From contig CBDBBG010000079.1 of the NCBI GenBank assembly GCA_965202585.1, positions 1 through 64,000 on the forward strand: a stretch of 64,000 nucleotides of DNA, given 5' to 3'. This stretch comes from Thalia democratica (taxonomy: Eukaryota). Of this stretch, positions 21,633-63,900 are shown in pieces; positions within the stretch are counted from its first letter, which is position 1; each line of letters starts with the position of its first letter. The position numbers and the translations under genes are program-made. The notes beneath the pieces were generated by a model that had not been told where the DNA came from, did no database searches, and saw nothing but the letters and a program-made list of their open reading frames with translations.

Positions 21633-23478
21633 TTATAAAGTTTCCTGAAAAATATTGAGTTTGGGATATTTGACACAGTGATAACAATTACTATCCAGCT
21701 CGAGTTGCTCGAAACTAACTTCCTTCTCCCATTTTGATCTGTCTGAATCGAAAACAACGAACTTGAAAACAACTCGAAAAAAATCAAATTTGTTAGAAAC
21801 CACTATTATCTTGCTGCCATTCACCACGCACTTAGGGATGAAACATGTCCTCTTAGGCCACGGAGCTTGAAGAAGAGCGAACTTCCCGCTGTAGAGATCA
21901 AAAACCTCGCAACTTTCCGCTCCACCGATCACGTACATTTTGCTCCCGATGCTCACCAAGGCGTGAGAAAGTTTTCGCTCCATCATGTCGGGCATGTCAC
22001 GTGACCACTCACCTGCGCAGTGATCGTACGCTTCAACGGATCTCGGATGATCGAAACCTCCTGAGGTGACAATTCTCCCGTTGAATACGGTTGACACGGC
22101 TATCTTCCTCTTGTGTTTGGTGTCTTCCAGCTTTCTAAGACTTTTAGTGCTGGGATCAAAAAGGACAAAGTTGGTTCCTGATAGGTCAGGTTGATGACGG
22201 CCCCTGACGATTCTTGACGCTTTACGGAGTTTTCCCCCTAAAATGTAAATCTTTCCGCCAAACTGCAAATTGAAAAATCATCGCAGTTTATCAAAGAATC
22301 ATCGGGAAACGTTACATGCTCCCAGGATCCAGTCAAAACTAAGTAAGACCACACCGACAAACTATCAAGAAAGCGATCGTAACCCAAGAAGTATATGATC
22401 CCGTTCACGAACTCAACAGAAGACACGTCAATATTTTCATCTCTACAAGCGATCTCAGTAAAGGACGAGTAGTTTTTCTTATCGAGCTTGAACACGCTAT
22501 AGGTACGGAACTTATTGCTGCAAAACGCCACCTCGAAATTATCCTGAGCGCAATGTCTCACTCGACAGTCCACAGAGCTCGGGTTAAGACTCAGAATAGT
22601 TTTATCGCTGATAGCCTTAAGTATAACCCTCTTACTCTCAGCACATTTTGAAAATGATTCAGCATCTAACAATGTGTTTAAGGCAGCAGTTGAGAGCAGA
22701 GGCAGACGAATTTTTTTCACCGTATCTATTGCGAGCTTGCTTCTTGATTTTGGATCGTGTTCAATCCAACTGTTCACAGCTTTTGCTACCTCAAGCTCCG
22801 AGGTGATATTCAAGTCTGAACTGGACAAGATCCTCACAAAGAGATCAAAGCTCAAACCGTCCAGCATTTTATTCTCGGCCAAGTAGCAGAACCACCTTGT
22901 TATGAAGTCGAAAGTGCACTTTTGAATTTGTTTGTTTTGTGCAATGTTGGAAAACTGATGGTAGAAACAAACATTATTAATGTTCAGATTGATCTTGAAT
23001 GAGTCGAGAAAGTTTTGCTTTGCATTGGCAAAATTGAAGAGTTTTGCGACTTTGTAAAGTTTGAAGAAATTTTCGTTGGATAACTTTGCATTGCCTACAA
23101 AAGTTTAGTTATTTCTAATTTAACTAGTTTAATAAAAAAAAAACAGAAGTTATTGAAAGTAGATAGAGATGCTAACTATCAAAAGTATATTTTCTATTTC
23201 TACAAAAAAAACTATCACAAAACTTAACAAAGAGTAAAAAACTCTTTACCTGTACGAAAAAAATCAGAGAAAATTTTCAATGCACTTTCATCAAAACACG
23301 AAACTGCATTTCTTTTGAAACTTTTCACAATTTCGTCTTCGGAATTTTCGTTTTCATCGAAGTTCCTGAGAAACTCTTCACAAAGTTCACGGTTCTCAGA
23401 GTTCGTGGTTTTTATTTTTTTAACAACAGGTGCGCTAGATGCTTCAATGTTGCCAGTTGTATTTTTAAAAGTTGACAT
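21633..23478 (-). pseudogene. BTB-BACK-Kelch copy 3, exons 23478-23250 and 23094-21633, 1-nt frameshift at ~22255 (pseudogene or sequencing error)
   Basis: 155-bp phase-1 intron 23249-23095. ctttccgcc here vs ctttcccgcc in copy 4 splits the exon into ORFs 22238-22882 and 21633-22268. Spliced length 1691 nt. Confidence 0.8.
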
Positions 23479-28697: not shown

Positions 28698-28854
28698 ATA
28701 TTATATGTTTTGGTTTTAAGAAAACAAATAGAGAGATCTCAACTGCTGGAGGAGAAGTAATATATTTATTCTTTCAAAAAATTTATTTTGCAAACTAAGT
28801 TTCGGTCAAAGACCTCGTCAGTGCTTGAATAAATTTTATTCAAATAGAATATAA
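28698..28854 (-). mobile_element. 157-bp retroposed insertion carrying a hammerhead ribozyme (Penelope-like or retrozyme fragment)
   Basis: Flanked by a perfect 14-bp direct repeat gtaagtataatact (28684-28697, 28855-28868); the paralogous site near 37610 is empty with a single copy of the motif. Confidence 0.75.
28778..28837 (-). ncRNA. Type I hammerhead ribozyme motif (GUU cleavage triplet)
   Basis: Minus strand: AAAAUUUAUU CAA GCA CUGACGA GGUC UUU GACC GAAA C UUA GUU / UGC AA AAUAAAUUUU. Complete CUGANGA and GAAA cores, 4-bp stem II, 2-bp stem III, stem I of 3 bp + internal loop + 10 bp. Confidence 0.75.
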
Positions 28855-28882
28855 GTAAGTATAATACTTAATACTAAGTTAA

Positions 28883-32418: not shown

Positions 32419-34297
32419 TTAAAAATTTTCCGAAAAAATATTGAGTTTCGGATATTTGACACAGTGATAACAATTACTATCCAGCTCGTATTGCTTGAAA
32501 CTAACTTCCTTCTCCAATTTTAATCCCTCTGAATCGAAAACAACATAATCAAACTTGTTAAAAACCGCTATTATTTTGCTGCCAATCACTACGCACTGAC
32601 AGAAGAAAAAATTCTTCTCAACCCACGGAGCTTGAAGAAAAGCAAACTTCCCGCTGAAGAGATCAAAAACCTCGAAACTTTCCGCTCCACTGATCACGTA
32701 CATTTTGTTCCCGATGCTCACCGGGGCGTGACCGCTTTTTCCCTCCATCATGTCGGGCATTTCACGTGACCATTCACCTGCGCAGTGATCGTAAGCTTCA
32801 ACGGATGTCGGATGATCGAATCCTCCTGACGTCACTATTCTCCCGTTGAATACGGATGACGCGGCTCCGCTCCTGAAGTGTTTGGTGTCTTCCAGTTTCC
32901 TGAAACTTTTAGTGCTGGGATCAAAGACGACAAAGTTGGTTCCTGATAGGTCACGTTGATGACGGCCCCTGACGATTCTTGACGCTTTACGGTACAATTT
33001 TCCCCCTAAAATGTAAATCTTTCCCGCCAAACTGCACGTTAAAAAATTGCCACAGTTTATCAAAGAATCGGTAAACCTTACATGCTCCCAGGAACCAGTC
33101 AAAACTGAGTAAGACCACACCGACAAACTATCAAGAGAGCGATCGTAACCCAAGAAGTATATGATCCCGTTCACGAACTCAACGGAGGACACGTCAATAT
33201 TTTCATCTCTACAAGCGATCTCAGTGAAGGACGAGCAGTTCTTATTTTCCAACTCGAACACGGTATAGCTACGACGAGTGTTTTCATTAGTAAGGTGATA
33301 GGTATGTGTACTGGGTGCAACAGACTTGCTGCCGCAAATTGCCACCTCAAAATTATCCTGAGCACAATATCTCACTCGACAGTCGACAGAGCTCGGGTCA
33401 AGAGTCTGCACAGTTTTATCGCTGATAGCTTTGAGTATAAACCCCTTACTCTCAGCACATTTTGAAAATGTTTCAGCATCTAACATTGTATACAGAGCAG
33501 CAGTTGAGAGCAGAGGTAGACGAATTGTTTTCACCAGACCTATTGTAAGCTTGCTTCTTGATTTTGGATCGTGTTCAATCCAACTTTTCACAGCTTTTGC
33601 TACCTCAAGCTCCGAGGTGATATTCAAGTCTGAACTAGACGAGATCCTCACAAAGAGATCAAAGCTCAAACCGTCCAACATTTTATTCTCGGCTAAGTAG
33701 CAGAACCACCTTGTTATGAAGTCGAAAGTGCACTTTTGAATTTTCTTGTTGTAGGCAATTTTGGAAAACTGATGGTAGAAACAAACGTTATCAATATCCA
33801 GGTCAATCTTCAACAAGTCGAGCAAATGTTGCTTTGCATTGACGAAATTGAAGAGTTTTGCCACTTTGTTAAGTTTAAAAATATTTTCTTTGATTAGCTT
33901 CTTATTTCCTAGAAAATTTTAGTTAATTTAAATTTTTATTGTTTAACTAAATTAAACATACATTAATAAAGCTAGTTAGAGATGCGTGCTAATAATTGAA
34001 TATCTTTTTTATAATTATTAAATAAACATCAAGAAACTTAAGAGCGATTAAAAAAAAGTTCTTACGTATGTAAAAATATTTAGAGAAGTTTTTTAATTCT
34101 TTTTCATCAAAACACAAAACTGCATTTCTTTTGAAACTTTTCACAACATTTTCGTCTTCGGAATTTTCGTTTTCATCGAAGTTCCTGAAAAACTCTTCAC
34201 AAAGTTCTTGATTCTCAGAGTTCGTGGTTTTTATTTTTTCAACACTAGTAGCGCACGAGGCATTAATGTTACCAGTTGTGCTTTCAAAAATTGACAT
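32419..34297 (-). CDS. Divergent BTB-BACK-Kelch protein, copy 4, intact, 573 aa; exons 34297-34066 and 33908-32419
   Basis: Phase-1 GT-AG intron 34065-33909; spliced length 1722 nt with no internal stop; BACK and kelch motifs as in copy 1. Confidence 0.9.
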
Positions 34298-40794: not shown

Positions 40795-42272
40795 CTTTGA
40801 AATGTTTAATTTTTTTGTACTGAACCTTCAACATAATATATATAAAACACTCGTTGCAATAAAATAGCTTTAATTAGCTTCTAACAAATATTGTTAAAAA
40901 TTATGTACTAATTATTTTTTTGTAATACAAGAAAAACAAAATTGCTGATTTTTCGGGAAAAAATTTGTAAAAATACAGTTTTTAATAAAACTACTTTATA
41001 AACCTTGTGATAAACATAAATAGTTAACAATTTCCGTTGAATTTTTTTTTGTAAAGTTTCTGATAGAAACTTGTTATATTTTGTTTGTTGTATAGTTTAT
41101 TCCGTTGCATTATCTTTCTAATGAGTAGAAAGACCATTTTCTACCAAAATATTCATTTTAATAGAAATATCATGATAAAGTTTTCAAAACATTTTAAGGT
41201 CAATTTAAAAATAATAAAATAAATAGTACTATTTTTGAATATACTTTTACTTGTTTTAATATAAAAAGTGTAATGTTATTTTATTCTTGAGCAATATTGT
41301 TATTCAAAAATTATCTAATTATGTTTTGTAAAGTATTAAATAATTTTAAAAGCAACTGTCAAAGTTCTTTTTATTTATTTGTAAACTTAAGTTAATGTTT
41401 TCTAATATAAAACAAGAATTCCGATTTACTTAGTATCTAATTCATTTAGTTTTTTATTGATACCTCATTTATTTGAAAAAATATAACATAATACGTTTTA
41501 TTTTTCTTAGATTTACTTTAGTACTTAGAAAGTAAGGCTTATTTGAAATAGTATCTTACTAAGATAGAATGAAAACAAATTGATAAAAAATCATACTGTA
41601 GTTTAAAGTTTTAAAGTATATAATGACGTGATATCCAATGTTAAAAAGTTAACTAAGTGCTTATGGTATATACATTTGGTATACGGATAAATCTCTTTAA
41701 AATTAAAACAATCTAAAATAAACAAGCGATAAAGATCAAAATTAAAACTACACTTTAAAATACTTAGTATAAGTATTTAAAAAGTCTAGTTTGGTAAACG
41801 AACTTTTTCCGAACTAGACTTTTTAAATCCTTATCTCTATTATAAAACAACTGAACTGAATTACTCTTGATATAGATAAAAAATATTAACCAAAACTTTT
41901 TTAAGATATGGTAAAATTGTTATGTGTATCATTGTGGCATATAGTAAAAATGAAAATAGACCAACTTTAAAAGCTTTTAATATGCTTGTACTTCAATATT
42001 TTTTTATAATTTTTTTTTTATAGTGATCTACAAACATTAAAGATTTGATAAAAACCTATTTTAATCATTGGAATCGTTTTGAAATTTTTAGGATATCGAG
42101 TTAAAAACTCAACTGAAATATGTCTAAAACGCATCAAATAACCATGCTGTGAAAAGAATAGTTAATTTTGTCGGGTTTTTTGAATTTGTATTTAATTTTT
42201 TTGTTAGTAATTATCATTTTTTAAGCTAAAAATGTCTCTATAAAATATAAAAAAAAAAAAAAAAAAAAAAAA

Positions 42273-42310
42273 CGATACCACTTGGATTTGAACCCGCGAC
42301 CTTCTGATCA
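42273..42310 (-). pseudogene. tRNA-derived 3' half (tRNA-Trp-like, B box) followed by a 24-nt T tract, left arm
   Basis: Minus strand TGATCAGAAGGTCGCGGGTTCAAATCCAAGTGGTATCG resembles metazoan tRNA-Trp GATCAGAAGGTTGCGTGTTCAAATC from memory; T stem degenerate, no 5' half. Confidence 0.55.
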
Positions 42311-42342
42311 TTAACAAAAAAAAACTAAGTCAAAAAAAAAAA

Positions 42343-42904
42343 GTTTTACAACCGCTAGATTTAATAGAACTTTATTTACTACCACCACAGACGAATTTCA
42401 ATAAACTTAAAACGACCTAAACAGTTAGCTAAATTATGAAACAATTTATAAATAAATCAATTTGCGTCAAGTCTGACTAACTACTATCGAAAACTAAGAA
42501 GTTTACAACCGCTAGATTTAATAGAACCTTATTTACTACCACCACAGACGAATTTCAATAAACTTAAAACGACCTAAACAGTTAGCTAAATTATGAAACA
42601 ATTTATAAATAAATCATTTTGCGTCAAGTATGACTAACTACTATCGAAAAATAAGAAGTTTACAACCGCTAGATTTAATAGAACCTTATTTACTACCACC
42701 ACAGACGAATTTCAATAAACTTAAAACGACCTAAACAGTTAGCTAAATTATCAACAATTTATAAATAAATCATTTTCCGTCAAGTCTGACTAACTACTAT
42801 CAAAAAATAAGAAGTTTTACAACCGCTAGATTTAGTAGAACCTTATTTACTACCACCACAGACGAATTTCAATAAACTTAAAACGACCTAAACAGTTAGC
42901 TAAA
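42343..42904 (+). repeat. 157-bp tandem repeat, ~3.5 units (left foldback arm)
   Basis: accgctagat recurs at 42351, 42508, 42665, 42822. Confidence 0.95.
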
Positions 42905-44417
42905 ATGTCGGATGGCTTGGCGTTCAGCAAACAGATCCGTCGCTCTACTGAGCACAAAAGATAGCTTTTTTAAAGAAAGTGTTCAACGTTTAAAAAAGCT
43001 TACTTATATCTAATAAGAAAGTCCATTATCGTAAATAGTTAATAGCGATGTATTGTATATTGAAAAGAATTTAGACTTTAAGATATAAAAATTATTTAAA
43101 CCGGTAAACGAATATACTTATTTCTCTTAAAACAAAAAAGAAACTGTTAAAACGTAATAAAACAAATTTATAGATTCAAAGGTTGGAATTTGATCAATTT
43201 TAAATAAAAAATAGCATTAATAAAGTTTATGTTTAAAATAAAAACAAAAATCTTTATAAACATTATAACTAAAACTCATTTTTAGTAGTTATAAGTAATA
43301 ATTTTAAAAGTTTCAATTAAATGCTTTCAATAATTAGTCTTTCAGTTAAAATAAACACAATAAAACTGTTTAAACGTCCTTAGTAGAACCCTTTTCTACA
43401 TATTTAACATTAGTAATTGGTCGAGGTATGGCTTTATAGGCAATTTAAGTAAAGAATATGAGAATAAATGTACTTTTAACGTTTAATAGACACGAAAATA
43501 AAGTTATCGCATCCAAAATTCTAAAATATTACTTTACTACTTAATTAGACAGACAGTTTTCATTTAAAGTTAACAGTTTTAATATAAAAACTAATTATTA
43601 GACTTTTTAGTAACAAAAAACATAAAAACGCTTATAAAACCTCTTATGTAGAGGTTTTTAGCACAAAAATTACAAAAAATAATAAAAATGCAGTTTGCGC
43701 AAGTATAGTATATAAACTTACAATAAATAAACTTTTTAACAGAAACAAAAACACAATTTAAGTGTCTTCAATGTTTTTATAGACAAAGTATTATGAAAAA
43801 ATTCAACTACTGTACTTAACAAAGAAAATTTCTTTTCATAAAATTCTATACCTACAATCCTTATTGACAACATATATTACAATTCAGATAGCTTTATAAT
43901 CCGTAAAGCAGTTAAACTTAGTAATAGTTTGTATAAGTAATTTAATTTTCTATGACAATAAACAATTTAAAATGGTTTGGTAGGCAGTTATAACAACGAT
44001 AATCTTACAAAGTACAAACTTTTTGGTGAAAACAAATACAAAAAAACTTTTTCACACAGGTTTTTATCACATAAACTAGAAAACTAGTTAAAAAGTGTAA
44101 GTTGAGCATGTTTAAAAAAAAAAATTACAATAAATGAACTTTTAGGCTTAAACAACCACAAAACAACATTTAAAACGACTTCAAAGTTAATGTAAACAAA
44201 TTGTTTTAAAAATAAATAAGTTTGTATTTTATGATTGTTTTAAGAATTAGTTTTTTATTTTGTTTATTTTGTTATATTAGCAAAATAGACATTTTGTTAA
44301 TTGTTTTAGCATATATTTCTTTAACTTACATCTAAAAATGTAATTGCAGTGCAGAAAATTTAGAAAAATTTATAAAATATGAAATACATAATAGCTTTAT
44401 ATGCTTGAGTTAAACAA

Positions 44418-44499: not shown

Positions 44500-45354
44500 T
44501 ATTTTTATTAAATAATTTTGATCTGCAGTGCCACCATTTGACTCGAAAAATTTTGAGTCTATATTTTTTGTTTTCTTAAAAGTTTTCTTTTTAAAGTCTG
44601 TAGAGTAACCAGATTAGCTCTGCTGATATAAAACAGGGCTAATTGAAATTACCTGACTGAAATTTAAAATTCACTAAAATAGATATTCTCCATCTTTTTT
44701 AAAGCAATATACTTCAAACAATTTCATAAAGGCAAATTTAAATTGAATGAGAAAAGAAACAAACAAACTTTTACTAATATTTTTATGAAACATTGAAACA
44801 AATTGTTAAATTATAACTTTGTTTATTAAATTCAAGTCATAAAGTTAAAGATTAAAGCTACGTTCTGCCCTGGTGTGTCTTTTAGCAATTTCATTTAATT
44901 CGATAGATCATTTTACTTTTATGGCCGTTTTTATTTCATCATTAAATATTGGCAAAAAAATAATGTAAACAGCCTTTTTAAAAATAAATCGCTAAACTGA
45001 GAAATTTTAAGAAAATGAAAACTATAAACAAACAATAAAAAAAGCATTTGTATACATTAATTATAATATTTACACTGATTAATATTGTAATAAATCGTAT
45101 GAAAAATTAAGCAAGTCGTAAAATAAGTTATAAACTATTTTTATTTTATGACATACCATAAATTGAAGTTCAAAATTCCAGGTTTTTCCAGATTTATATC
45201 TAAAATTTCTAAAATTTCAAAAAATTATACTTTTATATAAGATATCATGTTAAACTCTAAATTAATTAAATTAATAAATTAGTTTTTTAATAATTTCATA
45301 ATTATTTAATTAATTGTTTCAGTGTTGCCAAAAATCTTATAAACCTTGATTTTG

Positions 45355-46710
45355 AGACTTAAGGCTAAAAAACCTGAAAGTTTTGGAAATTTGAGATCTT
45401 GTTGAAACAATCCTGGAAAACCTGGAATTTTGAAACAAAACCACTAAAGACCCTGGAAGGACCCACATTTTGATACTTTAGGTTAAAAAACCTGAAAATT
45501 TTGGAAATTTGAGAAGTTTTTGAAACAAACCTGGAAAAACCTGAGTTTTGAAACAAAACCACTAAAAAACCTGGAAGGACCCACAATTTGATACTTTAGG
45601 CTAAAAAACCTGAAAATTTTGGAAACTTGAGATCTTGTTGAAACAATCCTGGAAAACCTGGAATTTTGAAACAAAACCACTAAAAACCTGGAAGGACCCA
45701 CATTTTGATGCTTTAGGCTAAAAAACCTGAAAGTTTTGGAAACTTGAGATCTTGTTGAAACAATCCTGGAAAACCTGGAATTTTGACACAAAACCACTAA
45801 AGACCCTGGAAGGACCCACATTTTGATACTTTAGGTTAAAAAACCTGAAAATTTTGGAAATTTGAGAAGTTTTTGAAACAAACCTGGAAAAACCTGAGTT
45901 TTGAAACAAAACCACTAAAAAACCTGGAAGGACCCACAATTTGATACTTTAGGCTAAAAAACCTGAAAATTTTGGAAACTTGAGATCTTGTTGAAACAAT
46001 CCTGGAAAACCTGGAATTTTGAAACAAAACCACTAAAAACCTGGAAGGACCCACATTTTGATGCTTTAGGCTAAAAAACCTGAAAGTTTTGGAAACTTGA
46101 GATCTTGTTGAAACAATCCTGGAAAACCTGGAATTTTGACACAAAACCACTAAAGACCCTGGAAGGACCCACATTTTGATACTTTAGGTTAAAAAACCTG
46201 AAAATTTTGGAAATTTGAGAAGTTTTTGAAACAAACCTGGAAAAAACCTGAGTTTTGAAACAAAACCACTAAAAAACCTGGAAGGACCCACAATTTGATA
46301 CTTTAGGCTAAAAAACCTGAAAATTTTGGAAACTTGAGATCTTGTTGAAACAATCCAGGAAAAACCTGGAATTTTGAATCAAAACCACTAAAAACCTGGA
46401 AGGACCCACATTTTGATGCTTTAGGCTAAAAAACCTGAAAATTTTGGAAATTTGAGATCTTGTTGAAACAATCCTGAAAAAACCTGGAATTTTGAATCAA
46501 AACACTAAAAAACCAAGAAGGACCCACATTTTGATGCTTTAGGCTAAAAAATATTGAAAATTTTGGAAACTTGAGAAGTTATTGAAACAAACCTGGAAAA
46601 ACCTGGAATTTTGAATCAAAGCCACTAAAAAACCTGGAATGACCTGGATTTTGATGCTTTAGGCTAAAAACCTGAAAATTTTGGAAACTTGAGAAGTTGT
46701 TGAAACAAAC
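45355..46710. repeat. 118-bp satellite, ~11.5 units, with a 353-bp three-unit higher-order repeat
   Basis: gg(c/t)taaaa starts at 45363, 45481, 45599, 45716, 45834, 45952, 46069, 46187, ~46306, 46424, 46542, 46662; ORF pairs recur exactly 353 bp apart. Confidence 0.95.
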
Positions 46711-47272: not shown

Positions 47273-47940
47273 CGTAAATAAAGTTCCATTAAATCTAGCG
47301 GTTGTAAACTTCTTATTTTTTGATAGTAGTTAGTCAGACTTACGCAAAATGATTTATTTATAAATTGTTTGATAATTTAGCTAACTGTTTAGGTCGTTTT
47401 AAGTTTATTGAAATTCGTCTGTGGTGGTAGTAAATAAGGTTCTATTAAATCTAGCGGTTGTAAACTTCTTATTTTTCGATAGTAGTTAGTCAGACTTGAC
47501 GCAAAATGATTTATTTATAAATTGTTTGATAATTTAGCTAACTGTTTAGGTCGTTTTAAGTTTATTGAAATTCGTCTGTGGTGGTAGTAAATAAGGTTCT
47601 ATTAAATCTAGCGGTTGTAAAACTTCTTATTTATTGATAGTAGTTAGTCAGACTTGACGCAAAATGATTTATTTATAAATTGTTTGATAATTTAGCTAAC
47701 TGTTTAGGTCGTTTTAAGTTTATTGAAATTCGTCTGTGGTGGTAGTAAATAAGGTTCTACTAAATCTAGCGGTTGTAAACTTCTTAGTTTTCGATAGTAG
47801 TTAGTCAGACTTGACGCAAAATGATTTATTTATAAATTGTTTCATAATTTCGCTAACTGTTTAGGTCGTTTTAAGTTTATTGAAATTCGTCTGTGGTGGT
47901 AGTAAATAAAGTTCTATTAAATCTAGCGGTTGTAAAACTT
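47271..47940 (-). repeat. 157-bp tandem repeat, ~4.3 units (right foldback arm, inverted relative to 42343-42904)
   Basis: agcggt recurs at 47297, 47453, 47610, 47768, 47925. Confidence 0.95.
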
Positions 47941-47970
47941 TTTTTTTTTGACTTAGTTTTTTTTTGTTAA

Positions 47971-48008
47971 TGATCAGAAGGTCGCGGGTTCAAATCCAAG
48001 TGGTATCG
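47971..48008 (+). pseudogene. tRNA-derived 3' half plus T24 (48009-48032), right arm
   Basis: Exact inverted copy of 42273-42310. Confidence 0.55.
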
Positions 48009-49082
48009 TTTTTTTTTTTTTTTTTTTTTTTTATATTTTATAGAGACATTTTTAGCTTAAAAAATGATAATTACTAACAAAAAAATTAAATACAAATTCA
48101 AAAAACCCGACATTTTTCATGGTCTATTTTCATTTTTACTATATGCCACAATGATACACATAAAATTGTACTGGTAAAAGTATAAACTTTTACAGCTGTA
48201 ACACTTATTTGTTTTCAATGTAAATAAAAAATAAACTAACAATATATCTTTTCACCAAAAAAATATACACTTTAAAACGTTAAAGATTATATTTTTTGTG
48301 ATAAAAACTTACATTTAGGCTCTTTCTTCAATAAATACTCTTTATTTATGGTTCAAGATACTTTTGATCTTAAATAATATTTTCCTACTGATTACTAGAA
48401 TTTTTTAGATAAATGCGCCTCTCAATGGTATTTTTCTAAATAGTGCGGCCCGCGAGCAAATAAGGCTGCCGACCGTGATTTAGATCTTTAAAAACTATAA
48501 GATCCACGTAGTTCTCTTTACCTGTATTTGAAATAATTTACTTTTTTGTACTATTGATTATACATTTTAAAAAACTTACATATCAATAGTAAATCGTTTT
48601 ATTAATTACTGTTCTGTTTTACTTCTGAAAATACTTAAAACGTTCTCGCATTTTTAAACAAACTAAATTTTAAGTTTACATTATAAAAATTGTTGTTTTC
48701 TAAAGAATGTATTGCTAGTTTCATCTACTAGGGTGAACATAAAAGAAGAAAAAGTTTTGAAATTTTACAACAGCTAGCTATTCTAAATCAATAGCTACTT
48801 TAAATCTAAGCTATTAAGTACAATAATTTAATATTCTATTTTAAATTTTAAATCTAAACACCAACTTTCTACAAAAATCAAAAATTAGACATGCTAATAT
48901 TTAGTCAACAGACTAGTGAAACGTATAACTTTGTTAAACCAATAAGCAAAACAACTTTTATTGCAATTAAAGAAAACAACTACACAGATAAACAACCATA
49001 ATTTCATGCTTTATTTAGTTATTAAAATTATATCCCCATGAAACTTACTGATGTAGTTCTTTCAGTAAAGTAACTCTTAGAT

Positions 49083-50737: not shown

Positions 50738-53700
50738 CTAACATTATGTACCAATTTATTTTTGAAAGACAAAAAAAAATTCTGAGATTTTGTAACAAAT
50801 TCGTAAAATATAGTTCTTAAAAAATTTACTTTATAAACCTTGTGATAAAATTAAACAGTTAACAATTTCCGCTAAAAAAAAACTTGTAAAGTTTCTGTTA
50901 GGAACTTGTTATATTTAGCTTATTTAAAAGTTCATTCCTTGCTCTGTCTTACAATTAAGTAAAAAGACCATTTTCTACAAAAATATTCATTTTGATAGAA
51001 ATATCTTAAATTCTTAACATAGTTTTTAAAACTTGAGAGAGTATATCAAAAGTTTTAGAAATAGTAAGTATTATTTTTTAAACAAAAGTTTTATTTTTTA
51101 TTTATTTTAGTAGTTTAATATTGTTTCATTCTTTGTGCAACATTAAAGTTCAAAACTTATCTAATTAAGTTTTGTAAACTATCAGATAATTTTAAACTAT
51201 TGAAGTCAAATTTGTTTTCCTTAATTTATAAACTTAAGTTGATACTCTTTTAGTATGAATGATACAAATCTGTTGAAACTAACTAGGTGTATTTATAGAC
51301 GTAATTTCAATTCTATTTAAAAAAATTAAGCTCATGAAAAAATTAAATTTAAATATCTATAGCCTAAACCAGTAGTCGATAAAGTGTACATCGGTGCACA
51401 CTAGTGTACACAGAATTTTTTTGTGGGGTGCAGGAAATTTGTAGGTTGCATGAAATTATTAGGATAAACATAAAAACAAAAATTAAATTTTTACATTTTT
51501 ACATTTATTTATTTCAAGCAACAAACTTAAATATTTTAGTTATATTCAGCCTTGGTGTTTAATTTGGATTTTCATAATTGGCTATGTTAATCATAAGATT
51601 ACTTGAGGCTAAAACTCAACTGTCATTTAAGTAATTATCTTCAAGTAAAGAAAATGTAGATGCTCACATTTATTGTCCATAGTTGATATGGAGAAAGTTT
51701 TGTCCTTCATCAACCTACAATCATGATAGGAAATTAAATGAATTAAATTTTAAAGCTTAATATTTTATTGTTTTAAGTAACTATTTTAAATTACAATACT
51801 TAATAAATCAATTTTACTTTATTTAAACAAAATTAACTAGTATTTTACAATTTTTATACTAAATAACTGTTATTCCATAATACTGAAAATAGTTTCTTTA
51901 ATAATTTAACTTAATAATAAGTGTTATACTTACAATAAAGAACAAAATATTTAAAATAAAAGAAAAATAAATGTTTTAAAATCTTCTTAAGTACATAAAT
52001 TCTTCTCTATAAATACATATTAATAACATATTATTTAAAGTAACAAATTTTATTTCAAACAATAGAAGTTATTTATATTTATATATTTTCTTATTATTTA
52101 TTATTAATTTATTAGTACATTTATATGGAAATAGAATTTAAATAGTACTTATAAAAGTTATAAAAATTACAGTCTTAGATTAATACAGAGTTGCCACACA
52201 CTAAGGATACTTGGAAATTTAAAAAAGTTTTGTGAGGATTAAGGCTGTTTTGGATTTTTCTGAAGTTTTATGTAAATCTTATGCTAGTTAGTAAGTATTT
52301 TTTAAAATAAAGTTTTAGCTAGGAGAATTCACTAGTTTTTAATATGAATAATTATCTACAATTTCTTGTTTAATTGGTTTTTTTGAAAATCTTAAGGCAT
52401 TTGTTCTTAATTAACTGTACATTTCTTAGTTTTTGAACTTATGTTTACTATTTTCTTTTTTTTTCCAAATGTCAGGATAATCTCAATCTAATTTGATGAA
52501 ACATTTGCTGTTTTTTTATTCAGATTAATATTTATACTCTTAAAAGTAGTAACTCTGTTAGTAATCAAATAATATCCAGTTTAGGTTTTAGTATGAATCA
52601 GGGATGCCACACACTCATACCAGTAAAAATTTCCTTAAAAATACAATTTTACTAAGGATGTCTTTTTTTATTTACAAAACTTTAGCTAGTTCCTCCGAAT
52701 GCTTTTATGATTCAGTTTTTTCTTTGAAAAGTGTTTTTTAATATTATATCTTACTCTTCATATTGTAATAATGATAATTTGAGATATTAAGGATTAATTA
52801 GGTTTATACTTTTTTTACTTTTTGCCTTTCTCTTTTTCATAAACTTAAGATTACCCAGACTAGTTTGATGTAACTCATGCTTGGTTGCCATACACTAAAG
52901 ATAAGTAAAGCTAGTTGAAATAATTTTTTGAAGTTTTGATGATAAATTGTAATGATGCTATAGTTTTGGCTAAGTTAGACTAGTTTGAAATTTAAAAAAA
53001 AAACTTCAGCCAGATTAATTTTTTTAATAGAAATCTCAGAACTATTTCAAATTGTTAGGAAATTTTAGTCAAAAGTTTATCCAGAATCAAGATCTTAAAT
53101 GCGATTTGTTTGTTTTAGTTTTAATATTCTTATAACTTTTAGTCAGTTTAGTTTGAAAACTGATCTTTAAAAGCTCATCTAACTTTAAAGTTAAATATCT
53201 AAGAAAAAATCAAAAGATTTAAAAAACTCAAGATGGCTCAGGGAAGTTTTAAGTCATTAAGTTTTTTTTTTATATGACAAGTGGCAACCCTGCTAAAGTT
53301 GTTATTGGTTACTCAGACTAATTTGTTTTGGTTTTAAGAAAGCCATAACTTTTATCTATATTGCTTATAAAAATTCATAAACTATTTTGAATTTAACTAA
53401 AACTAAAAACTAAGAATTATTCTTTATTACTATAATATTTAAATTTTTTACTTTTTTAACTTTATAATATATGAACTCAAAATAATAATTGTTAAATATT
53501 TATATTTTGCATAAGTTCTTGAAATTGACTTAAGAATAGTTTTCAGTTTTGTATTATAATGATAAATAATTTTAAAAATAACAAATAAAATTTCTATATC
53601 CTGTGAAATATGAAATTATGTTTTAGAGTTTTAGTTAATGTTTGTTTTAAAATAAACAAAGCTATTTTTTGTTTCAAGTGTTTCAAAAATTTGATAGTTC

Positions 53701-55251
53701 TTTAAATTTTTTTAATAACCTAAACACTTGAAAGAAAGACTTATAGCTTTTATTCATTTTAAGTATTTAAGTGAATTTTTATTCAGTAGTTTGAATAATG
53801 TAAGTTAGTTGAGGTATTTGAGATTCAAATCAAACCTTAGACTGTTAAGGACTTTTTAGTAATAAGGTTAAGTTTAATTTTTTTTCTAAATTTTAATGCT
53901 AGTTTTTTCAAATTTAAAACCTTTTGAGCCTTAATAATAATATTTTCAGGCATATTAGAAATGTTTTTGTTAATTTATAAAGAGCTCAGGATAGTTTAAG
54001 AATTTCTGAAAATCTCAGTACTTTTTTCAAGTATTTAAATGATATAAGGTTGATTAAGGTTAAACTTTCGTTTATATATAACTAGTATTTTTAAAAAGCT
54101 GGATTTTTAATGATTTTAATTTTTTGTTTAGGGTTGAAGGGACTCAGGGCAGTTGTAGTCACTCAAAAGAGTTTATTTTTAACCCAAAGAAGTGGCAACA
54201 GTATACATTCAGTTATAAACTCAAAACAAAGTCATTTAAAACTAACTTATAACAATTATTTTTTTTTATTTTCATGTCTGAAATAACTTAATTAACAAAA
54301 TTGTTTAAAATAAAGAAGTGATAATCTTTAACAACCTTGAACTTAATGAAGTAAAAAATTTAGTACATGAAATGAACAATAACAGCTTCAAGTAATATTT
54401 TATATAGAGCAACAATATACATACTTGAAAATTAACTGAACTTTGTTTGTTCTTTCTTTTTTGTTCAACATCTATGTTAAATACAGAAAATAATAATAAA
54501 ATAATGTTAAAGTTAATTGAAAATTTAATGTATGTGTTTAGTTCTTAATAAAACATTTGAGAGTACTAGGTGTTAATTAGGGTGAGTAGAAATGTGTTTA
54601 TTTAAATTTGTAAAAGGAAATCCATATTAATACTGTAGAAATAGAAGTGCATTAATAAAGAGGACTCTGCATGATAAAATTGTTATAAATTTCAGCTTCA
54701 TTTGATATAAGGCTTTCAAATAGTATTAGTTTGATATAGTTGATATGGCTGTCAGCTTTCAGTTGATGTAGTTTGATTACATGATTAAAGTTTAGTTAAT
54801 TGTTTCTAAGCGTAAAAACGTATTTTAAAATCAATTAAAAGTGTTTTCGTATTCCTGCCACTAGAGGCTCTCTTAAATTAGATTTTTGGGTGCACATAAT
54901 TTTTATTTGCAATTCAGTGTTTACAGGTTTCTATTAGCTTGATGGTTTAGGCTATGAGTAAATAAAATAAATTAATTTTTATTTTTACATCATAGGTCGT
55001 TAAGCTAATAAATATAATTTCTACTTTCAATATTTGTTATTTGTTAAACATACAACATGAAAATTTACAAATGACTTAAAACTAACTTATTATCAACAGC
55101 AACCTAAAATAAATATATGAATTGTCAGTTGTCGTCAAGCTAATCAATACAATTTTTACTTGTATTTTTTATAAAACATCATATATACAGTTTTACAAAT
55201 GATATTAAAACTAACTTATTATCGACAGTGAACTAAAATAAATATATAAAA

Positions 55252-55993
55252 ATGTCAACTTTTGAAAACACAACTGGCAACATTAATGCCTCGAGCGGTA
55301 CTAGTGTTGGAGAGATAAGACCAACGAACTCTGAGAACCGTGAACTTTGTGAAGAGTTTCTCAGGAACTTCGATGAAAACAAAAATTCCGAAGACGAAAA
55401 TGTTCTGAAAAGTTTCAAAAGAAATGCAGTTTTGTCTTTTGATGAAAGTGAATTAAAAACCTTCTCTAAATATTTTTACATACGTAAGAACTTTTTTTTA
55501 TTTCGCTCTTAAGTTTCTTGATGTTTATTTAATAATTATAAGAAAGATATTCAATTATTAGCACGCATCTCTAACTAGTTTTATTAATGTATGTTTAATT
55601 TATTTGAACAATAAAAAATTAAATTAACTAAAATTTTCTAGGAAATAGGAAGCTAATCAAAGAAAATATTTTTAAACTTAACAAAGTGGCAAAACTCTTC
55701 AATTTCGTCAACGCCAAGCAACATTTGCTCGACTTGTTGAAGATTGACCTGAACATTGATAACGTTTGTTTCTACCATCAGTTTTCCAACATTGCCAACA
55801 ACAAACAAATTCAAAAGTGCACTTTCGACTTCATAACAAGGTGGTTCTGCTACTTAGCCGAGAATAAAATGTTGGACGGTTTGAGCTTTGATCTCCTTGT
55901 GAGGATCTTGTCCAGTTCAAATTTGAATATAACCTCGGAACTTGAGGTAGCAAAAGCTGTGAACAGTTGGATAGAACACGATCCAAAATCAAG
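55252..55993 (+). CDS. BTB-BACK-Kelch copy 6, partial (exons 55252-55483 and 55642-gap)
   Basis: Phase-1 intron 55484-55641; frame open to the N gap; N-terminus closest to copy 4 (INAS, LLDLLKID). Confidence 0.8.
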
Positions 55994-56093
55994 NNNNNNN
56001 NNNNNNNNNNNNNNNNNNNNNNNNNNNNNNNNNNNNNNNNNNNNNNNNNNNNNNNNNNNNNNNNNNNNNNNNNNNNNNNNNNNNNNNNNNNNN
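55994..56093. other. Assembly gap (100 N), likely hiding ~2 kb
   Basis: Left edge corresponds to ~2455 and right edge to ~3985 of the duplicated segment. Confidence 0.95.
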
Positions 56094-56694
56094 AAATTTT
56101 AGAACAATACCAAATAATTTTAAAAAAACATAAATGTTAAAAACGTTCGGGAATCTGTTTAATTACATCTCTAATTTTAACTGCTGTTATTATAAAATTA
56201 GCAAAAATATGCTTAACTCAAATGTATTTTTTACAATAACCTTATTATAGCAAAACTTTAGTAAATAGTATTGTACATTTTTGAAGTAAAATTTAGCTTT
56301 TCAATTTGATACAGTGAATAATGATTATTTATTCAAATATAATAGAATTTGTAAACTTTATGTAACTTTGTAAATAGTATTATTTCAAAAAGCTCTCAAA
56401 AGTTATAAATTCATTATGACATCACACATAAATTCTATTTTTATCTCAGTTTCCGTTTTTCCAAGTGTAACACCAGCAAATTACAAAACTTTAGCTCATT
56501 TTGATTTCTTTTTAGTTTTTTATTTAAATATTTATCAAAATATTGTAGCATGTTATGTTTCTGCTTTATAAACGTTTTTAGTAAACAATCTACATTTTTA
56601 TTCAGGAGTCGTAAAAATTATTTTTCAAAATACGCCCCTGATGTAAAATGAAATACCTAACAGTTTATAAGACTATGGAATCTTTGATGTAATA

Positions 56695-57058
56695 TAGGGT
56701 GTTCAAAACTTTTTGTGAAGACTCCCTTAAAGAAGCCAAAAAGCAATGGCCCCCTTCAACATATTATTTCAAAATACTTATGTTGAATACACCTAACATC
56801 TTTGTTGGATGTTCATCATCAACTCTAGAATATATAAAGTAAGCTTTAAATTATGTCCTTGTGGCTCCTCTTTTACAGCTTACGAACCTCTAACTTACTA
56901 AAGTTTTACCAAAATATTTAGTATAAGTTACAAAACTACTCTTAAACACGCCAAGATCTACTTTTGCTTTCTTCCACCAAACTCAGAATAACTAGTGTAA
57001 GTTTCAAAATATTGCCCCCTTTGAGCTTATAGTCCCCTAAATTCTCTGGGAAACCCTG
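56695..57058. mobile_element. hAT-like MITE (paralog of 4589-4942)
   Basis: tagggtgttcaaaac ... tgggaaaccctg; flanks atgtaata / atctaaga. Confidence 0.55.
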
Positions 57059-57733
57059 ATCTAAGAGTTACATTACTGAAAGAACAATACCAAAAAGTTT
57101 AATGAGGGTATTATTTTAAACATGACTCTAAAGAAAGCTTATACTTATGGTTTCTAATTTGTGCAGTTGGTTTCTTCATTGGCAATTTATTTATTTATTT
57201 ATAAAAGTTATACGTTTCACTAGTCTGTTGATTAAATATTAGCATGTTTTATATTTGAATTTTTGTAGAAAACTGGTATTCAGAGGTAATAAATTATATT
57301 TAATTATTGTATTTTACAGCTTAAATTAAAAGTTGCAATTGATTTAGAATAGATAGGTTCGGTATAATTTTATAACTTTTCCTCTTTTAATGTTGACACT
57401 AGTAGATGAAACTAGCTATAAATACTTTGGAAAACAAAAAACTTTTACTTAAAATTTAGTTTGTTTAAAAATGCGGTAACGTTTTAAATATTTTTATTTC
57501 AAAAGTAAAACAGGAATTGATAAAACTAGTTATTATTGATATGTATTCTCAAAAAGTTATTGAAAATGACTAATTCAATAGTTACAAAAAAAGTTTAGTT
57601 ATTTTATGCTAGAGATGTTAACAATATATTTTATTATAAATTCTGAAATTGAGTTAATAAAATTTCTCTAAAAATTTACTTGTATTACTTACTAATAAAA
57701 AGAACTGAGTAAAAATAAAAATTGATAAATATT

Positions 57734-58609
57734 CAGGGTTCGTGTGCGATTTTTTTTTTTCATTTAGCCTGACTGAGACCAATTTAGCCTGACATTTTTT
57801 CAAAGTAAGGAAAATACCCTTTAGAAGTCATTTGAGGTATTGGGAATCTGATTAGTACTGTGGTAGTCTCCTACTTTAACCAGCTTTAGATCAAAACTTT
57901 AAAAACTTTTTTGAACTTTAATAATCTGCAAAAAGAACCTCATAGCGTAGTTACAAGTCAATAAAATAAGACTAAATTGTGAAAAAGGTGATTGACTCCC
58001 CTTTGCCCTTAACATAACAAATTCAGTGATAATTTTTCAAAAAAGTGTTATATCTAATCTACTACTAGTGTAAAAATTTAATATATACTACTAAACACAA
58101 TTGTTCAATTTAATTAAGCACTTAGTTAAAACATTACAACCAGAAGATTTATAATAAAACGACGTGCATTTTTGTGTTTTATTAAAATTTAAAATGAAAC
58201 GGTTACAAGAGTATTAAAATTCAAACATACAGCTAAGTTTTTGAACTAAACTGTAATATTTAAAATGTATTTTTTTAATGAATTTTCAAAATTATGTTAT
58301 ATATAACTTACTCAAAACCAAATAATGAAGATTCTTAAAAACTTTATAGAGATCCAACAAAAATTTTCAAGCATTTATTTTTACAAATACTGACTGATTT
58401 TGTTTTTAATAACTAATTACTAAATTCACATCTCAATTTTATCTTTTAAAAGATTTCTCGATTTTTTTATAATTAAAATTTTCAAGCATTTGAACTCAGA
58501 AAAACTGAGATTGTTAAACTTTTACATAAAAAAACTGATTTAGCCTGACGTTTTTCAACTTTTTTCAAAAAAACTGATTTAGCCTGACTTAGGACGCGCA
58601 CGAACCCTG
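57734..58609. mobile_element. Non-autonomous TIR element (paralog of 5620-6487)
   Basis: cagggttcgtgtgcg ... cgcgcacgaaccctg flanked by aatatt. Confidence 0.6.
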
Positions 58610-59616
58610 AATATTAAAAAATAATTTATATAACTTACAGGTTAAAAAAAATTTAAAACTCATAGTTTACATTAAATTGTACTGTTAACGTTATAATAAA
58701 AATAAATATAATATACAGCTGTAAGAGGTTTATTGATTATTCGAATACAAAAAAAAACATTAAAAATAAAAACATGCAAAAAAAAAACACCAGCAAATAA
58801 TAACACGATACAAGAAAAATAAAAAAATTGTAAACTGTCTAAAATGTTCAATAAGATATGATTTAAAACAATTTGCTTCCAAAGGACTTTTTATCAAAAT
58901 TGGACCTAATTGAAATTTTATGCTGAAAATAGTTTTATTTGTTTAACAAAAACTTATATTCGTATTAAGTTCATTTTGGCAAAAAAAAAATATTCAGTCC
59001 AAAATTACATACAAAATTTTATACGTAAAACTCGCATTAATAAGTATTTGTTTTCATATTTTGTAGTTTACTAAAAAGTTTCAGTCAATGAAAAAAAAAA
59101 AAACAAAAAAAGTTCAATAAAAGAGGTTAATTAAAGGCGTTTTGAAAGCACCCAAATAAAAAAATTAAAAGTGAAAATCAATTAAATTTAAAATCATGCT
59201 AAAATTAGTCAATAATTTCGTGGTAAAAATAATAAAAAAGTGTTGCTTCTTTTTTTTACTTGCATTTTACTTTTTTTAATGTTAACGTGCGCAAAAACAG
59301 GCTGAAATTTTATACTTTTTTTTAAGTTTTTTGCTTTTTTTCAAGAATATGTTTTCATAAACATTTCAATAAATACGAATCAAGCGATTAACAACTTCTA
59401 CGCTCTCATTCATCTTTACCCATGAGTTTTTCTTTACTTTTAATGACGAAGTAAATCATGAGTGTTTTTTGTGATTATGACGTCATGAACAAACTCACGT
59501 CACAATCAGAATATTTCTGCGAAGCAAGAAAAACTTGTGTTTTAGTCACATACTATAAAATCCTAGTAGCTGTTTTACATAGCGACGTCAAAATTACACA
59601 ACTATGACATCATTTA

Positions 59617-59847
59617 TTATGAGGTCACTCGAAATCGTACACCAGTATTTTGGTGTCTTCAGACTGGTGAATTGATATTATGACGTCACTCGAAATCGTA
59701 CACCAGTATTTTGGTGTCTTCAGACTGGTGAAAAGGTATTATGAAGTCACTCGAAATCGTACACCAGTATTTTGGTGTCTTCAGACTTGTGAAAAGGTAT
59801 TATGACGTCACTCGAAATCGTACACCAGTATTTTGGTGTCTTCAGTT
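59617..59847. repeat. 61-bp minisatellite, 4 units, at the FBXW7-B stop codon
   Basis: Units start at 59617, 59678, 59739, 59800. Confidence 0.95.
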
Positions 59848-60891
59848 TGGTACCTGCTGCCCACCGCGCAAACCAGCTTGGAGGAGGAAGCGGAAATCCT
59901 CCAAACGACTCCTCCGCTGCCTCGGGATTCCAACTCGACTACGTTTCTTATCACCTGAAAAAAAATATTCAATTATTATTAACATAATCAGGATTGCCAG
60001 CATTTTTTTTTGAGAATTTTTTTCACAGGTTTTCGAAAGTACACGTTTTAGGGTCGAAGTTTAGTTTAAAAACCGTGTTAAGTAGTATTTCAACATGAAA
60101 AGATACTGTAAAATTAAATTAAGTTTGTTTTTTAATAAAAGTAAAATTTATTATAACTTGTTTTTCCATATGATGATATTTTTTCTGTATATTATCTAAA
60201 TATACATGTGAATACTCTTTAAAGTTCTAGATTTATTTTAATTTTTCTCAAACACCAGGTTTTTTGGTAACCCTGTTACAAAATATTATCGTTGGATATT
60301 TACAATAAAATAACAAATATAATTACTTGTCCGGTTTTAGCGTCCCACAATTTAACAGTTCCGTCATCAGATGACGTAACAACGAATTTTCCGTGAAGTT
60401 GTAGTGACGTCACTGCCGATTCGTGTTTGCTGTCTCCTGTTAGAATACTTAATTTATATATATATATATATAAAGGTTTATTTAAAGATGCAAAACTCAA
60501 AGGACTCAAGTTTCGTGACTATTCACTCATCAGCTTTAAAACAAGTTTAAAATAAAGCACAAAAAAAAATCACTAATGAAAGTAAAAAATTTTTTGCATA
60601 AATAGATTATGACGTAATTTTGAAACTATTAATATTCATGCAAAACGGCTTGTGCAAAAATTAATCTACAAACAGACAATAAACTAGCAAAAATTTATAT
60701 AACTTCAGTGAGTAACTATATATTAGGACAGATAATTGTGCTTTATTTTAAACTTGTTTTAAAGCTGATGAGTGAATAGTCACGAAACTCGAGTCCTTTG
60801 AGTTTTGCATCTTTAAATAAACCTTTTTATTAATAAAGCCCTCAAGGTGGGCTCAGTGTGAAAAATTTGATTTATTAAGTTAAATAACTTA

Positions 60892-60936
<45 letters not shown>

Positions 60937-63900
60937 TTTTTAATCTCTTAAAATGAAGTGTTTATTTTATTTTTATACTGTTAAACTTAATTAAGAGTTT
61001 CACTGCTGATTCAAGTTTACTATATCCCTGTGTAACAAGATTTGTCTATTTATTACATTTATTGCTGTTCAGAGTCGCAACTCTTTGTAGGCAAAATATT
61101 TCAGCCTGAATTTTTTAAAAACTTTAAACTAACCTTAATTGGCCTGATATTGTTTTTATAAATCCAAAATATTTTGTTGTTATAAAAGTGGATTGTAAGA
61201 AACATTAGTTGAAATGTTAATATAAGCAATATTGATTGACTAAATATAAACATAACCATTCTATATTTTCTAATAAAAACTTATAATAATCAAACAAACA
61301 ACCTTCTAATGTAGTCAAACATTTGCCAGTCAGTATATTCCATATTTTAACAGTAGAATCAGCATTTCCAGATACAAGTATGTTATCTTTTAATTGCATA
61401 CCACTTGTTAGTGATTGGTGGCCTAACAATTGGTGCAAACATCTGCCTGTTGATCCAATGTAGTGTTTAAAAATAAAATATTAATGTACTTTAAATAAAA
61501 AATAACGTAGTTAAATATCTATCTGAAGACAACTATTAATTAAATTAATCAAAAAATAATTAAACAGAAGTGGAAGCTTCCTAAACTCCGATTGATAAGT
61601 AAATATTTACCTGTTAGTTTATTTATTAGTTTATATTTTACCTGTAGAAGCATCCCAAACTCTTATTGAAGTGTCCAATGATCCACTTACTATGTATCTT
61701 CCGTCGAACTGTGGTTATAAATAGTTTAACAAAATGTTATGTAAAGTTTACAACTAAAGCTGTTTACAACATAACTAATTATGTACTTTAAAATGTTAAT
61801 ATTACATTAAAAGTTCTCAACTTATAAATAAGGAGAATAATGTCAATATGAAAATGACATAAGTAATTATGCAAATATAGAAAGACAACAACATATTTCA
61901 AAAACAAATCTCAAAATACTTTATAATCTAACTACAGATTTGTGATTATTGTTTGTTTGGTTAGATGTGTCACATGTTTATATTTCTGATTACAGAAGAC
62001 TAATGGTTTCAAAAAATTGTTAAATTAATTACTATTGGTTTAAAACACAACTTGTTTAACCCGTATAAAAACATATACAATTTTTGGAAATAAAAAAATG
62101 ATAAAAGATTTGCAAACACTAAACCCTGGGAAATATAACTTCAGACATTACAATGATATATATTATTTTTTATTACTAATTATTGTTCTTCCAGACAAAC
62201 TACCGCCCAGGGACTTAGCACAATCCGCGACGGATTTTTATAATTATCTTTACAAATACTCTATTAATTTTGTTTTGAGTAAACAACATTGCTTATCATA
62301 TAATTATTTTTTTACAGTTTTAATAACTTTCCAAGATTTTTTCTGTTTGTTTAAATTTTTTAAGTTACAGTGGCAAGGACTTTTTTTTATTGAGTGTGGT
62401 CTATCATTTATCAAAAGGTTAAAAATTTTAATTTAGATCCAAGTAAAAACAAAAATAATGTACACTTTGATGAATATTAAAAACTAAAACCAAAAAGTTA
62501 ATCTATACTTTGCAGTTAATAGAATCAATAAAGAGAAATTTGAAAGGAACTTAACCATTGTAAATAATTTCAATAAATACTAAATAAATAAGTATTAATA
62601 TATATATATATAATAAATGAAATCTTACAAAGAATTATGTCCAATCAGTGGTTGTTAATAAATTTAAAAAAATTATAAAAAATAGCAAACCTGCAATGAG
62701 TAAACCCTGTTAGTGTGCCCATGAAGCGAATGGGTGCAAGTTTCAGTGTTCGGGTCCCAAACCTTTACGATGAAATCGTACGCTCCACTGACCACGCGGT
62801 TGCCATCGTAACAGACGCACCTGACGGCCGCTAGGTGGCCGACCAGCTGGTGGGTGCACGTTCCCATGGTGACGTCCCACATTCGCAACGTTGCGTCACG
62901 TGATCCCGATACAACTCTGTAGATAATAGTATATATAAAATAAACTGTTTAATTTTTTGTATTGGGATAGTTATATGTTGGTGGTAATTGGTATAACATA
63001 GTTAATCTAAACTAGGGTTTTCTTTTTTTTTCATAAGGCCCCGTTTAAAGAGATAAAAATAGCTACGACCCTCTCCGATAAGATTTCTTAAAAAACTTCC
63101 CTTAAATACGCCGAAGACCTTATTTTTTGGTATTTATCATCAACTCCAGAATATCTAGTGTAAGTTTCGAACGATAGCTTTATTGCCCCCTCCCCTTTAG
63201 CTTCTTAAATTTCTGAAATGGTACCCAAAGGGGTCATCTGACTCACATTGGAATACTCTGAACTTAAGTATTATGTTTATTTTATATATTGAAACTTAGG
63301 GGTTACTTGTGTACAGGTTAAGAGTTTTTTGTGTTGAAGAGTTTTAAAAAGTAGCACACTATTTAGTAAGAATAAGTTTTTAGAATATTATCAAAATGTT
63401 TATTAACAGTTAAACAAAAATGTTTTAAGACATTTTTATGTTGTAGAAAAAAAATTCCAGTGATCAACGAAAGTTATAAATTTGAATATGCTATGTGAAA
63501 GTTTTATTTTATGTGTTTTTTACATTAAACAGTATTAATACTTTGTTTAAACAACTTTAATCAAAAACCTAGTGTTATTTAAATAATACTCTTTAAAATA
63601 TTACTAACGTGTTTCCGTGTAGAGCAAGACATCTCACTGTCGAAGAATGACCGAATAAAGTGTGAACACATTCACCTGTTATTAGAAAATTAAAGTGTGA
63701 ACACATTCAGATGAGAAAAAATAAAAATTGAAAACAAGTTACTATAACAAGCTAGTTTTGTTTATTGTCTAATTTTATTTGTCTAATTTATTATTGCAAA
63801 AACGTTATAAAATATTGTTTACATCAACTGCCGGTAAATAAAAAAATCAAATACTAACCGGTATCTGCGTTCCAAACTTTCAGTGTTCTGTCAGTCGACC

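Follow-up and report, generated by a model that had tools for sequence, protein, structure and literature searches.

The two hammerhead ribozyme motifs found on opposite strands within an intron of a FBXW7-like gene of Thalia democratica most probably represent a single young insertion, dead on arrival, whose integration relied on the machinery of a Penelope-like element (PLE). They are located in a 64,000-nucleotide stretch of DNA (GenBank assembly GCA_965202585.1, contig CBDBBG010000079.1, positions 1 to 64,000 of the forward strand), which is referred to here as the window. The layout itself is known, and each trait of the insertion has been published for PLEs. For the RNA template there are two candidates, a PLE end with heavy 5' truncation and a short PLE-dependent element that is non-coding and of the retrozyme kind; the locus cannot tell which of the two, because it carries no RT or endonuclease ORF and blastn shows no second copy of the family in the window.

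The insertion interrupts a gene encoded on the minus strand. Its location in a FBXW7 intron, as claimed in the original prediction, is borne out by the minus-strand WD40 exons that flank it, one of which has FBXW7 as its best natural match among solved structures. The exon next to the insertion (60327-60436, minus strand) was identified by ORF and tblastn and owes its FBXW7 name to the neighbouring exon; the other FBXW7-like WD40 exons of this gene copy, called copy B, were found in the same way at 63967-63857, 63673-63608, 62885-62691, 61435-61301, and 59942-59811, all on the minus strand. Next to the 60436 boundary of the adjacent exon, the acceptor AG was read from the sequence at 60438-60437, and the left end of the insert lies 35 nt upstream of this acceptor in the sense of the gene. 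A second set of FBXW7-like exons, copy A, was detected by tblastn at 10691-10497, 9264-9130, 8732-8625, and 8251-8120.

The window thus holds two paralogous 3' parts of FBXW7-like genes (1-8800 and 53403-61400), about 52 kb apart, which share 94-98% identity over long stretches and whose exon peptides are 86-100% identical. In both copies, tandem arrays of a 61-bp unit (7377-8160 and 59493-59911) adjoin or overlap the last FBXW7-like exon, and fragments of the last-exon peptide reappear inside the 61-bp array in tblastn. Between the two copies lie at least five paralogous intronless ORFs in both orientations, Kelch-like by eye (2108-3526, 13615-14883, 21633-22882, 32419-33864, and 55686-56102); frameshifts break up some of them, and the 100-N gap at 55994-56093 falls within one. 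Additionally, the window contains a 118-bp tandem array of at least about 11 copies with 157-bp tandem arrays about 2.5 kb away on each side (42169-42957, 45231-46710, and 47342-48112), and the 157-bp arrays form an inverted pair of about 490 nt that is 99% complementary (42169-42661 and 47620-48112).

The paralogous intron allows a comparison with a copy that lacks the insert. The intron is about 397 nt long in copy A versus about 862 nt in copy B, and global alignments show copy A to lack everything that lies between the TA tracts, in agreement with the absence from that copy that had been claimed. The alignment score against copy A is 161 when 60473-60895 is removed from copy B, versus 145 when only the 355-bp block of inverted arms and spacer is removed. 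As the global alignment shows several more indels between the two introns, copy A is no clean empty site, and the exact ends of the insertion are unreadable there.

An inverted-repeat search returned arms at 60463-60562 and 60736-60835, which are 96% complementary and 173 nt apart. Base-by-base comparison delimited the core arms as 91 nt each (60472-60562 versus 60736-60826) with a single mismatch. Identity between the arms falls to random just inside 60562 and 60736, and their apparent similarity beyond the 91 nt consists of TA-rich sequence only. The arms and their spacer make up the 355-bp block, so that the 355-bp insert with 91-bp inverted arms described from the first reading proved exact in this comparison. 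The left, inverted arm (60472-60562) carries its hammerhead in the sense of the minus strand, which is that of the pre-mRNA, with the core at 60533-60503 and the helix III loop UUGA; we read this arm as a 5'-truncated copy that was primed from the opposite DNA strand. The middle segment of 173 nt (60563-60735) is unique and AT-rich; it contains no ORF, matches nothing else in the window, and belongs to whichever of the two copies is longer, probably the plus-strand one. The direct arm (60736-60826, plus strand) has its core at 60765-60795, with stem I formed by 60758-60764 and 60796-60802 and with the loop UCGA.

The right arm is followed on the plus strand by a one-sided extension of about 60 nt, a putative tail of the element, delimited by sequence comparison as 60827-60886, or to 60895 if the target duplication comprises (TA)n only. 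Nothing corresponding to it lies next to the left arm or in copy A. With this tail, the plus-strand copy is 324 nt long (264 nt and the tail of about 60 nt), with a GC content of 26-27%, and the 3' end of the arm seen at the locus is ...AAACCTTT, or that end plus the tail. Within 60827-60886, a GC-rich hairpin, AGCCC-UCAAGGU-GGGCU, is followed by an AT-rich palindrome, UUAAGUUAAAUAACUUAA; these structures might be a protein-binding or start-site signal of the element.

Both sides of the insertion show the same octamer in front of a TA tract. The left flank, ACTTAATT(TA)9 on the plus strand at 60447-60472, is the candidate left copy of a target-site duplication and holds the final 35 intron nucleotides before the acceptor. 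The candidate right copy, ACTTAATTC(TA)19 at 60887-60933, also on the plus strand, has an additional C and more TA repeats. The setting between (TA)n tracts given in the first reading is supported. The left arm adjoins (TA)9 directly, but the right arm stops short of (TA)19, from which it is separated by 60-69 nt of unique sequence (60827-60895). A weaker match between the flanks extends to GTTAGAAT versus GTTAAATA and adds two indels, and random 22-mers of the window reach the level of the flank match in 11/19948 and 85/19958 trials. We read the flanks as a candidate imperfect long target-site duplication of the form ACTTAATT(TA)n. On this reading the insertion would be the 414 bp at 60473-60886, made up of the inverted 91 nt, the 173-nt middle, the direct 91 nt, and the tail of about 60 nt. 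The imperfection of the repeat, with its extra C, speaks against this reading, given arms of 91 nt that have a single mismatch. A longer duplication that would take in an exon-like piece at about 61000-61012 was rejected, as its 13-nt match is not significant (E 0.19).

These borders bear on an explanation raised at the outset, a cut-and-paste MITE. In this view the block would be a fold-back element whose 91-bp TIRs happen to carry a hammerhead and which was moved into a TA site by a Tc1/mariner-type transposase. Such an element would account for the long, near-perfect inverted repeats that bound the block and for the TA-rich sequence at both arm ends. However, the arm termini do not carry matching TA dinucleotides (TA followed by AAAGG on the left, CCTTTTT followed by ATTA on the right), the tail of about 60 nt occurs on one side only, the flank repeat is far longer than a TA duplication, and there is no transposase in the window. 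The one-sided tail and the long flank repeat in particular make us regard a MITE as quite unlikely.

The hammerheads themselves are complete. Read outward, each arm presents UUUAAAG, CUGAUGA, GUGA-AUAG-UCAC, GAAA, C, UCGA (UUGA in the left arm), GUC, and CUUUGAG. Every conserved core position is present in both motifs: C3 U4 G5 A6 N7 G8 A9, G12 A13 A14, A15.1-U16.1, and H17. Helix I comprises 7 bp (UUUAAAG with CUUUGAG) including two G-U pairs, helix II comprises 4 bp (GUGA with UCAC) closed by the loop AUAG, and helix III comprises 2 bp (A15.1-U16.1 and C-G) closing a 4-nt loop. In both motifs, three helices surround the core and helix I is open, which is the type I topology. The intact core, the GUC, the 7-bp stem I, and the 4-bp stem II that had been reported for both arms are all there, and the cleavage sites proposed from the first reading coincide with the motif boundaries, with predicted cleavage at 60795/60796 on the plus strand and at 60503/60502 on the minus strand. 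The two motifs face outward on opposite strands with cores about 230 nt apart, and in each arm 31 nt separate the hammerhead from the proximal 3' end.

The single difference between the arms, which had been placed in the stem III palindrome, is indeed found there (60508 versus 60790). It is a C-to-T change at a CpG that turns UCGA into UUGA, and with it the predicted energy of the helix III self-duplex goes from -10.7 to a weaker -5.8 kcal/mol, values that were computed for the helix III duplex only.

Motif searches recover the pair with different success. A loose pattern finds only two matches in the 64 kb, where 0.13 would be expected, and a strict descriptor that demands all three helices finds exactly these two matches in the window, with none across 300 shuffled sequences. 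The Rfam model Hammerhead_1 (RF00163) reaches 26.3 bits for the plus-strand copy and 23.6 bits for the minus-strand copy in full-length alignment, against a gathering score of 34; these matches surface only when a short stretch is searched, and neither Rfam at its gathering threshold nor an E-value scan of the whole window returned a hammerhead. Of the check by descriptor and covariance model that was suggested originally, the descriptor part thus succeeded for both motifs and the Rfam part stayed below threshold. The low Rfam score arises because helix I is A/U-rich and position 7 is a U, while the core is undamaged.

A separate hammerhead-like sequence was noted elsewhere in the window. A 157-bp insertion at 28684-28868 has a perfect direct repeat of 14 bp, GTAAGTATAATACT, on its two sides and contains on its minus strand the hammerhead-like core CUGACGAG ... 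GAAAC ... GUU with a helix I of only about 3 bp. Its only Rfam match is a weak one to Hammerhead_3 (12.9 bits, E 4.7), and it has no sequence in common with the 60.5-kb element in blastn.

Hammerheads of this kind have been described in the terminal repeats of PLEs (Cervera & de la Pena 2014, PMC4209133), where pairs on opposite strands 100-700 bp apart were interpreted as truncated PLEs and where single motifs of the PLE type were inactive in vitro. PLE insertions show strong 5' truncation, often with an adjacent inverted, 5'-truncated copy that gives rise to inverted repeats, an optional tail of 30-40 bp at one end only, and, in some clades, a bias for (TA)n (Craig et al. 2021, PMC8557442). 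A purified PLE protein cuts both strands of the target in vitro and extends them, favours AT-rich DNA with an ATT motif, and begins reverse transcription at two internal RNA sites whose spacing equals the genomic tail (Frangieh et al. 2024, PMC11167929). The locus resembles hammerhead-bearing truncated PLE insertions (PMC4209133, PMC8557442, PMC11167929) in the hammerhead near the 3' end of each copy, in the opposite-strand motifs about 230 nt apart, in the adjacent inverted truncated copy, and in the extension at one end. Similarly, it shares with PLE insertions a candidate AT-rich (TA)n target, the palindromic helix III, and a low predicted activity of the monomer. Unlike PLEs, it holds no RT or GIY-YIG coding sequence, and its tail of about 60-69 nt is longer than the published PLE tails of 30-40 nt. 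In its details, with a helix II of 4 bp, a helix I of 7 bp, and a real 2-bp helix III, the hammerhead is nearer to the 'canonical' metazoan type I, in contrast to the Schistosoma PLE min-HHR, which has a helix II of 7-8 bp and no helix III.

From this single locus, together with these reports, we infer the ends of the element, its two start sites, and its tail. The priming events are likewise a reconstruction from published PLE biochemistry, while the anatomy of the locus is observed. In this reconstruction, a PLE endonuclease would have cut both strands of the AT-rich ACTTAATT(TA)n, 35 nt upstream of the FBXW7 acceptor, and both 3' ends would have primed reverse transcription of a template with a type I hammerhead close to its 3' end, whichever version of the template was used. 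One cDNA would have begun at the proximal internal site and ended after 91 nt without a tail; the other would have begun at the distal site, added the tail of about 60 nt, and run for about 324 nt. The two cDNAs would then have been joined head to head, and such joining would leave the two hammerheads facing outward on opposite strands. At source loci, the hammerheads may serve the element when adjacent sense copies pair through the palindrome ACUCGAGU and cut, whereas at this locus they would be passengers, masked by the 91-bp hairpin in any transcript.

The arrangement may be compared with the inversions that twin priming produces in L1 insertions, in which a 5' inverted segment also stands beside a direct 3' segment within one target duplication. 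Unlike in L1 twin priming, the inverted segment described here repeats the 3'-proximal region of the direct copy and not an upstream region, which accords with two independent primings close to the RNA's 3' end by a PLE enzyme that cuts both strands. The same end picture, two near-identical arms around a unique spacer, could also have arisen if a single hammerhead retro-insertion had later undergone an inverted partial duplication through an accident at the DNA level, such as template switching at a fork or repair. The imperfect flanks and the extra B-specific indels show that several rearrangements took place in this intron, which speaks for such an accident. However, the end of the left arm coincides exactly with a (TA)n tract resembling the target, and the extension of both strands by a PLE protein has been demonstrated in vitro (PMC11167929). 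A later duplication of this kind therefore seems unlikely to us, and we retain PLE-mediated priming on both strands as the preferred origin.

As for the template, 60473-60886 contains no ORF, and no RT or EN ORF was found elsewhere in the window, where the 10 ORFs of at least 110 aa were inspected by eye, appear Kelch-like, and include none resembling an RT or EN. With neither an RT nor a GIY-YIG ORF, the locus can be no more than a truncated end or else a non-autonomous relative. In blastn, no other copy of the block was present in the 64-kb window, and the 24-nt ribozyme core had 0 exact matches in metagenome and viral contigs, the metagenome set being one that excludes the source organism.

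A non-autonomous relative would point towards the retrozymes, which are apparently PLE derivatives (PMC7229834; bioRxiv 10.64898/2026.07.22.740005). By definition, metazoan non-LTR retrozymes form tandem direct repeats, each with a type I hammerhead, and their RNA is expressed in linear and circular form. Metazoan retrozymes measure 170-400 nt and their circles are highly self-paired (PMC7229834). The unit of about 324 nt is non-coding and low in GC, as are metazoan non-LTR retrozymes (PMC7229834; bioRxiv 10.64898/2026.07.22.740005), and, like them, it carries a dimer-dependent type I hammerhead whose helix III is short and palindromic; mobilisation by PLEs is presumed for these elements. The kinship with PLE and metazoan-retrozyme hammerheads that had been suggested is supported. 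The proposed requirement for dimers through the palindromic helix III also agrees with the literature, in which hammerheads with a short helix III are inactive or weak as monomers (PMC4209133, PMC7229834).

Unlike metazoan retrozymes, the locus has no tandem direct array, only one sense motif on each strand, and an RNA that is not predicted to be unusually self-paired. A rod-like retrozyme fold of the 324-nt unit was considered and rejected, since its folding shows no excess structure over shuffled sequences (z -0.26 and -0.24). The locus itself fails the definition of a retrozyme, because it has no tandem array, one sense ribozyme per strand, and no excess structure. These observations also bear on whether the locus could be an active retrozyme source that yields unit-length or circular RNA. 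A plus-strand copy of 324 nt, within the metazoan range of 170-400 nt (PMC7229834), and its low GC content would suit such a source, but no strand holds two sense hammerheads, no tandem repeat exists at the locus, and folding predictions give no stability beyond that of shuffled sequence. As no two sense motifs lie on one strand, no unit can be excised and an active source is excluded, which leaves this the least probable of the readings considered.

What the insertion may do to its host gene depends on how its RNA folds. For the 355-nt block, the predicted fold contains the complete 91-bp stem, at -157.5 kcal/mol for the plus strand and -168.4 kcal/mol for the minus strand, the pre-mRNA sense. 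An arm constrained to the hammerhead is predicted at only -5.5 kcal/mol, and a free arm favours a rival hairpin of GAAACUCGA with UUGAGUUUU at a predicted -16.0 kcal/mol. Each strand has one sense hammerhead, as the original prediction of one ribozyme plus its antisense per transcript had it; in the pre-mRNA, the UUGA ribozyme is sense and the other antisense, and a second sense copy for helix III is absent. Because the ribozymes face outward, transcription of either strand reaches the antisense arm first, and the sense ribozyme can consequently pair with that arm as it emerges. The duplication of the target, for its part, would keep the original 35 nt before the acceptor, so that the splicing signals next to the exon would be preserved.

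The folding predictions weigh on the view that the insert is a working cis-regulator of FBXW7, in which the intronic hammerhead cuts the pre-mRNA or the hairpin gates splicing or cleavage. In the pre-mRNA sense there is indeed a hammerhead with an intact core, 35-125 nt upstream of the acceptor, and conserved intronic hammerheads are known in amniotes (cited in PMC7229834). However, the fold-back exceeds the hammerhead fold in predicted stability by about 150 kcal/mol, its antisense arm is made first, each transcript holds a single sense copy of a ribozyme type that needs a partner (PMC4209133), and the copy in the pre-mRNA bears the UUGA change that is predicted to weaken helix III. Moreover, the insert is not conserved, being absent from paralogue A, and it resembles an ordinary transposon scar. 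Cleavage of FBXW7 pre-mRNA by the intronic hammerhead appears unlikely, because the hairpin is predicted to dominate, the antisense arm comes first, and no second sense copy is at hand. The folding-dependent FBXW7 switch that had been envisaged finds no support in the predicted energies and the order of transcription, and a regulatory role of this kind is, in our judgement, highly improbable.

The long intronic hairpin could possibly feed small-RNA pathways as a putative siRNA source, as had been suggested, or affect the use of the acceptor. A further proposal is that outward-facing fold-back insertions of this hammerhead element in introns of expressed genes, such as this FBXW7 paralogue, act as putative hairpin-RNA genes, in which the 91-bp stem would be diced into small RNAs that target the active PLE or retrozyme family as a trap on the side of the host, with a possible side effect on the acceptor 35 nt away; we give this proposal very little credence. 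The resemblance to viroid-like RNAs that had been drawn from the layout on both polarities is superficial. Like avsunviroid-like circular RNAs, the locus has a hammerhead readable on each strand, but the two polarities of a viroid carry ribozymes that differ in sequence and sit at separate sites of a single replicating circle, in contrast to the locus, where one sequence is duplicated in inverted orientation in chromosomal DNA.

The locus therefore gives no support for a new ribozyme-based control of FBXW7. Instead, it would stand as a clean natural example of the signature predicted by in vitro work on a PLE, in which both strands are primed, two internal start sites are used, a tail is added on one side, and the target is AT-rich.
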